The position numbers were made by a program, and so were the translations under genes. 64,000 nucleotides of DNA. Origin: Dimorphilus gyrociliatus. Its lineage: Eukaryota; Animalia; Annelida. The notes under the pieces were generated by a model that saw only the letters and a program-made list of their open reading frames with translations, did no database searches and was not told where the DNA came from. The stretch is from assembly GCA_904063045.1 (NCBI GenBank), contig CAJFCJ010000006.1:1785463-1849462 (forward strand), read 5' to 3'. How positions within the stretch are numbered: position 1 is the stretch's first letter; each line of letters starts with the position of its first letter. This document shows, piece by piece, positions 47,267 to 47,341 of this stretch.

Positions 47267-47341
47267 GTTGCTTTTGAAATTATGACGGTCGGGATGGAAA
47301 TTCTGAACAGAGGCGTCACGACCTGACGTCACTTCAGCAGC
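47267..47341 (+). other. SECIS element, type II, in the selenoprotein 3' UTR
   Basis: ATGA-C at 47282-86 faces T-GA-C at 47324-27 (kink-turn core). Helix II GGTCG.GATG pairs with CGTC.CGACC; unpaired AAA at 47298-300; mini-stem TTCT/AGAG with GAAC loop; helix I GTTGC..TTGAA pairs with TTCAG-CAGC. Confidence 0.87.

Follow-up and report, generated by a model that had tools for sequence, protein, structure and literature searches.

The mechanism by which SECIS elements act, with an AUGA/GA kink-turn core, binding by SECIS-binding protein 2 (SBP2) and delivery of Sec-tRNA by the Sec-specific elongation factor eEFSec, has been summarised together with a core consensus, (A/G)UGAN for the 5' half and KGAW for the 3' half (PMC3753652). 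In the Rdx family, SelW2 is a selenoprotein in fishes and frog, and the mammalian Rdx12/MIEN1 is a Cys form (PMC3316567). The C-terminal CVIL of human MIEN1 is geranylgeranylated (PMC6738349). Sec forms of the SELENOW2/MIEN1 group also occur in invertebrates, and a 2026 study found that the invertebrate genes fall in the SELENOW2 branch of this group; MIEN1 is proposed to have arisen when SELENOW2 was duplicated at the base of the jawed vertebrates (PMC13134290). We analysed a stretch of 64,000 nt from the annelid Dimorphilus gyrociliatus, which we call the window, and conclude that a plus-strand hairpin at 47267-47341 very probably functions as a eukaryotic type II SECIS, in the 3'UTR of the transcript of a MIEN1/SELENOW2-like selenoprotein of the Rdx family. 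A literature search found no paper that names both D. gyrociliatus and selenoproteins.

The layout of the hairpin can be followed base by base. Its non-Watson-Crick core consists of a 5' half, AUGAC (47282-47286), and a 3' half, UGAC (47324-47327), and between the two, at 47287-47323, stand helix II, an unpaired G-AAA and a mini-stem. Helix II brings 47287-47296 together with 47314-47323 in nine standard pairs, one of them a T.G, and one G.A mismatch: the lower pairs are G47287-C47323, G47288-C47322, T47289-A47321, C47290-G47320 and G47291-C47319, and the upper part consists of the mismatch G47292.A47318 followed by G47293-C47317, A47294-T47316, T47295.G47315 and G47296-C47314. Above helix II are the unpaired G and the AAA (47297-47300, of which the AAA occupies 47298-47300), and the AAA begins 12 nt past AUGA, within the 10-13 nt required of a type II SECIS. 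The mini-stem is formed by four pairs between TTCT (47301-47304) and AGAG (47309-47312) around a 4-nt loop, GAAC, with one unpaired G on its 3' side before the return strand of helix II. Below the core, helix I pairs 47267-47272 with 47336-47341. The initial annotation had called this hairpin a canonical type II SECIS about 50 nt after the stop codon, with an ATGAC/TGAC core, a helix II of about ten pairs, an apical AAA, a TTCT-GAAC-AGAG mini-stem and a lower helix I. The core is exact, every listed pair and the G.A mismatch can be found in the sequence, the AAA, mini-stem and helix I are where they were said to be, and the spacing from the stop TAA (47231-47233) to AUGA measures 48 nt; the type II architecture, with its AUGA/GA core, helix II, unpaired AAA and mini-stem, also agrees with the layout predicted from the two-species alignment described below.

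The gene that carries the hairpin, also on the plus strand, is expressed and correctly spliced. In a public run (X1), one spliced contig of 1157 nt spans 45707-47631 with four GT..AG joints, in aligned blocks at 45707-45870, 45937-46097, 46419-46574, 46886-47071 and 47145-47631; once the stated cut offsets are applied, this puts the introns at 45873-45938, 46098-46418, 46576-46886 and 47074-47146. Both coding introns are confirmed to the exact nucleotide by the contig, which also reveals two more in the 5'UTR. A first 5'UTR exon at 45707-45872, whose start is the contig end and hence a minimum, is followed by a second at 45939-46097 and by an exon at 46419-46575 in which an ATG (46520), preceded by an in-frame stop, opens a frame encoding MSIRSVRRFVGIIIHVDY and the TG of a Cys codon. 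The next coding exon, at 46887-47073 (exon 2 in what follows), holds the rest of the Cys codon, Tyr, Ala, an in-frame TGA (46894-46896) that is the putative target of the SECIS, and 59 further codons belonging to the Rdx fold. The coding sequence closes, in 47147-47233, with ...SSACFIL and the TAA, and the 3'UTR extends from 47234 to the limit of the contig at 47631. The contig runs 294 nt past the hairpin, to at least 47631, which places the hairpin within the mRNA. Polyadenylation upstream of 47341, which the initial annotation had listed as evidence that would count against the element, is thereby excluded for the X1 transcript. Between the stop and the hairpin we found no AATAAA; the first one after the stop is at 47658-47663, so the true 3' end probably lies near 47680.

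Read over the confirmed junction, where TG ends at 46575 and C TAC GCT TGA resumes at 46887, the frame gives ...IIIHVDY-C-Y-A-U-PSYG, and the CxxU motif that straddles the junction is conserved in a close relative. A CxxC or CxxU after the first beta strand is the redox-motif criterion of the Rdx family, and the 59-codon exon piece that follows the UGA matches the Pfam Rdx model (PF10262) at 28.1 bits, with a cut-off of 22.6. The public protein DgyrCDS4616 (P0001), 100% identical to the locus, has 75 residues counted from an internal Met; with Sec in C-Y-A-U, the full product would be about 109 residues long. As for the surroundings of the gene, a FEN1-like flap endonuclease gene has its 3' end upstream (44000-45184, plus strand). 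Downstream is a convergent IRS/FRS2-like PTB gene (48443-49189, minus strand) with an N-myristoylation-type start, MGCSNGK..., whose transcript contig stops at 47730, roughly 100 nt away from the end of the selenoprotein contig.

The alternative that survives best, and one that we consider very unlikely, is that a SECIS-like structure has arisen here by chance or has decayed, with the UGA a true stop, in which case the product would be the annotated 75 residues or the gene would be decaying. The public annotation, with its start at an internal Met, is in line with this idea, but a protein started there would be without CxxU/CxxC, the defining redox motif of the Rdx fold, and comparison with the relative argues against it. 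Word-based protein searches, made with the post-UGA exon piece and with the public 75-residue protein, returned only self matches and one close relative, and a 57-residue Logan protein (P0002) led to two identical genomic contigs (L001 and L002) of the relative, which keeps the convergent IRS-PTB neighbour downstream. The in-frame TGA is kept there as well, at L001:364-366. Over exon 2, the window and the relative differ by 27 synonymous and 7 non-synonymous codons, and in the first 15 codons of that exon (Y-A-U...K-I), which run across the UGA up to the annotated Met, by five synonymous and one non-synonymous. Because synonymous differences prevail in this part and the TGA is kept, the sequence across the UGA is under coding selection; these 15 codons, which lie before the annotated start, evolve as coding sequence, as would not be expected if the UGA were a true stop.

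The hairpin itself also keeps its pairing through compensatory changes, which counts against this alternative as well. It aligns to the relative without gaps at an identity of only 69%, little above the 63% of the introns, and yet AUGA, GGAAA and UGAC are invariant between the two. In helix II and the mini-stem, all 13 standard pairs are kept, through one compensatory and three one-sided changes between these two species. The compensatory change turns a C-G of helix II into U-A, and all nine standard pairs of that helix are retained; in the mini-stem, a U.G has become U-A and the stem is kept. Two further compensatory pairs lie in helix I, so that for the whole element three pairs have changed on both sides and four on one, again between two species. 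Overall, pairing holds in 90.9% of cells, as against 34-54% when the partners are slid by 1-3 columns. A column-shuffle control, which is weak with two species only, reached the observed covariation score in 59 of 500 shuffles. From the two-species alignment alone, RNAalifold recovers both helices and the mini-stem, with the core and the AAA left single-stranded. The mismatch within helix II has changed on both sides, from G.A (47292/47318) in the window to A.G in the relative (L001:755/781), and remains purine-purine. Past the SECIS, the 3'UTR (47342-47631, compared with L001:804-1120) is 68-74% identical over about 290 nt, where introns show 63%, and it contains near-invariant blocks around 47343-47355, 47385-47405, 47432-47441 and 47476-47500. 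Elsewhere in the relative's contig, on the minus strand of L001:3044-3122, there is a weak match to the SmY spliceosomal RNA (20.7 bits, gathering 39, E 0.28) that is probably due to chance.

Two further observations could be read in favour of a chance or decayed hairpin. The first is that the Rfam match is below threshold. When the whole 64,000-nt window was searched with Rfam at gathering thresholds, nothing was returned; the gathering score of SECIS_1 (RF00031) is 35 bits and represents a curated cut-off, not a structural feature. In a search of the 401-nt stretch around the hairpin, on both strands and with 4227 families, SECIS_1 aligned full length, over all 64 positions (47274-47337), at 22.1 bits and E = 0.068. 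By our own arithmetic, the rescaled expectation for SECIS_1 alone is about 0.003 chance matches of such a score per whole window. A covariance-model hit, which the initial annotation had put forward as a check, is therefore present, but its score stays under the gathering value. For the relative's element, SECIS_1 was not reported in a 401-nt Rfam search at E up to 10 and appeared at 13.2 bits in an 86-nt search, so neither species reaches 35. The 5' AUGAC and the GA are present, but in both species a C follows the GA (UGAC), where the consensus has A or U; this UGAC end and the helix II mismatch probably contribute to the low score. To our knowledge, neither the UGAC base nor the purine-purine mismatch in helix II is known to disqualify a SECIS.

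The second observation is that a SECIS-like pattern is, on its own, at chance level. We scanned the whole window for a pattern of our own making (ATGA, AA 10-13 nt on, GA, and at least 9 of 10 adjacent pairs) and obtained two sites. Since 100 dinucleotide shuffles average 0.68 sites per window, the pattern by itself is not significant. The other site (31650-31604, minus strand) is without a covariance-model match and was rejected; it falls downstream of a sulfatase-modifying-factor (FGE)-like gene, past the AATAAA of that gene, and we take it as chance and use it as a chance control. The single-sequence fold of the hairpin at 47267-47341 is more stable than that of shuffled sequences (z = -2.45), and the hairpin stands well above chance because of its position, the transcript evidence and the pairing kept in the relative.

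Less credible still is a kink-turn RNA that does something else, for instance a box C/D-like element, or a site where an L7Ae-type protein would regulate the mRNA without Sec insertion: the relative's element does match SNORD30 (C/D box) weakly, at 15.3 bits, because its AUGAUG...CUGA resembles C and D boxes, but the 5' motif in the window, AUGACGG, does not qualify as a C box, the unpaired AAA, conserved and at its spacing from the core, is specific to SECIS elements, and the hairpin follows a gene whose in-frame UGA stands at an established Sec position.

We therefore favour a type II SECIS that serves the UGA of its own mRNA. By analogy with described elements, the AUGA/GA core would adopt a kink-turn with tandem sheared G.A pairs, and this core would be bound by SBP2. 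SBP2 would then bring eEFSec and Sec-tRNA to ribosomes at the UGA (46894-46896), which would be read as selenocysteine within C-Y-A-U, and translation would continue to the TAA at 47231-47233. Once the introns are removed, 312 nt separate the UGA from the AUGA downstream, and the last exon junction comes 177 nt after the UGA; given this second distance, mRNA on which recoding fails would probably be subject to nonsense-mediated decay. A tRNA scan of the whole window found no tRNA, and hence no tRNA-Sec there.

What does the hairpin mean for the annotation of this gene? For DgyrCDS4616, it would account for an in-frame UGA that does not end translation and for a public 75-residue model that is too short, beginning at an internal Met and without the catalytic CxxU motif. 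Because Sec forms of this family are already known in invertebrates, we regard the finding as an annotation fix: the element and the gene are ordinary for a family known to include invertebrate selenoproteins, and the novelty lies in correcting one annotation. A more general implication is that the Rfam score of an invertebrate SECIS, even a correct and conserved one, can be far under the gathering value, so a scan at gathering thresholds alone would miss selenoprotein genes of this kind.

Compared with the type II SECIS as modelled (RF00031; SECISearch3 model, PMC3753652), the hairpin is alike in its AUGA/GA core, its 10-position helix II, the unpaired AAA 12 nt past the core, the extra apical helix and its 3'UTR site 312 nt after the UGA. 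It is unlike that model in its score (22.1 bits vs the gathering 35), in a 3' core that reads UGAC and not KGAW, and in the purine-purine mismatch of helix II that both species keep. The mRNA as a whole resembles that of SELENOW1, which likewise encodes a small CxxU Rdx protein, has one SECIS in a short 3'UTR and places its UGA upstream of the last exon junction, but SELENOW1 is shorter than the annelid protein and is without a CaaX tail.

The protein is closer to the MIEN1 (C17orf37, Rdx12)/SELENOW2 group. The best PDB match is human MIEN1 (2LJK), with E values of 0.013 for the exon piece and 0.006 for the public protein, and MIEN1 fits the annelid protein better than any SelW structure does; the nearest ESM Atlas clusters are likewise of the MIEN1 family. 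The Rdx fold and a CxxU/CxxC near the N-terminus are shared with this group, and the length of about 109 residues is similar to the 115 of human MIEN1. Human MIEN1 differs in having Cys instead of Sec, and is for that reason without a SECIS, and its sequence similarity to the annelid protein is weak, as the E value of 0.006 indicates. At the C-terminus there is a predicted CaaX-type box in both species, CFIL in the window (47219-47230) and CRVL in the relative (L001:675-686), where human MIEN1 ends in CVIL (PMC6738349). We tentatively speculate, from the combination of Sec and a MIEN1-type CaaX tail that the relative also keeps, that, provided the architecture is truly of MIEN1 type, a prenylated, membrane-anchored Rdx selenoprotein might predate vertebrates, although we think it rather more probable that it does not. 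If it did, a pre-vertebrate MIEN1-type Rdx selenoprotein would conflict with the jawed-vertebrate origin proposed for MIEN1 (PMC13134290), and so the annelid Sec form with its CaaX box may be relevant to the dating of MIEN1 to jawed vertebrates.
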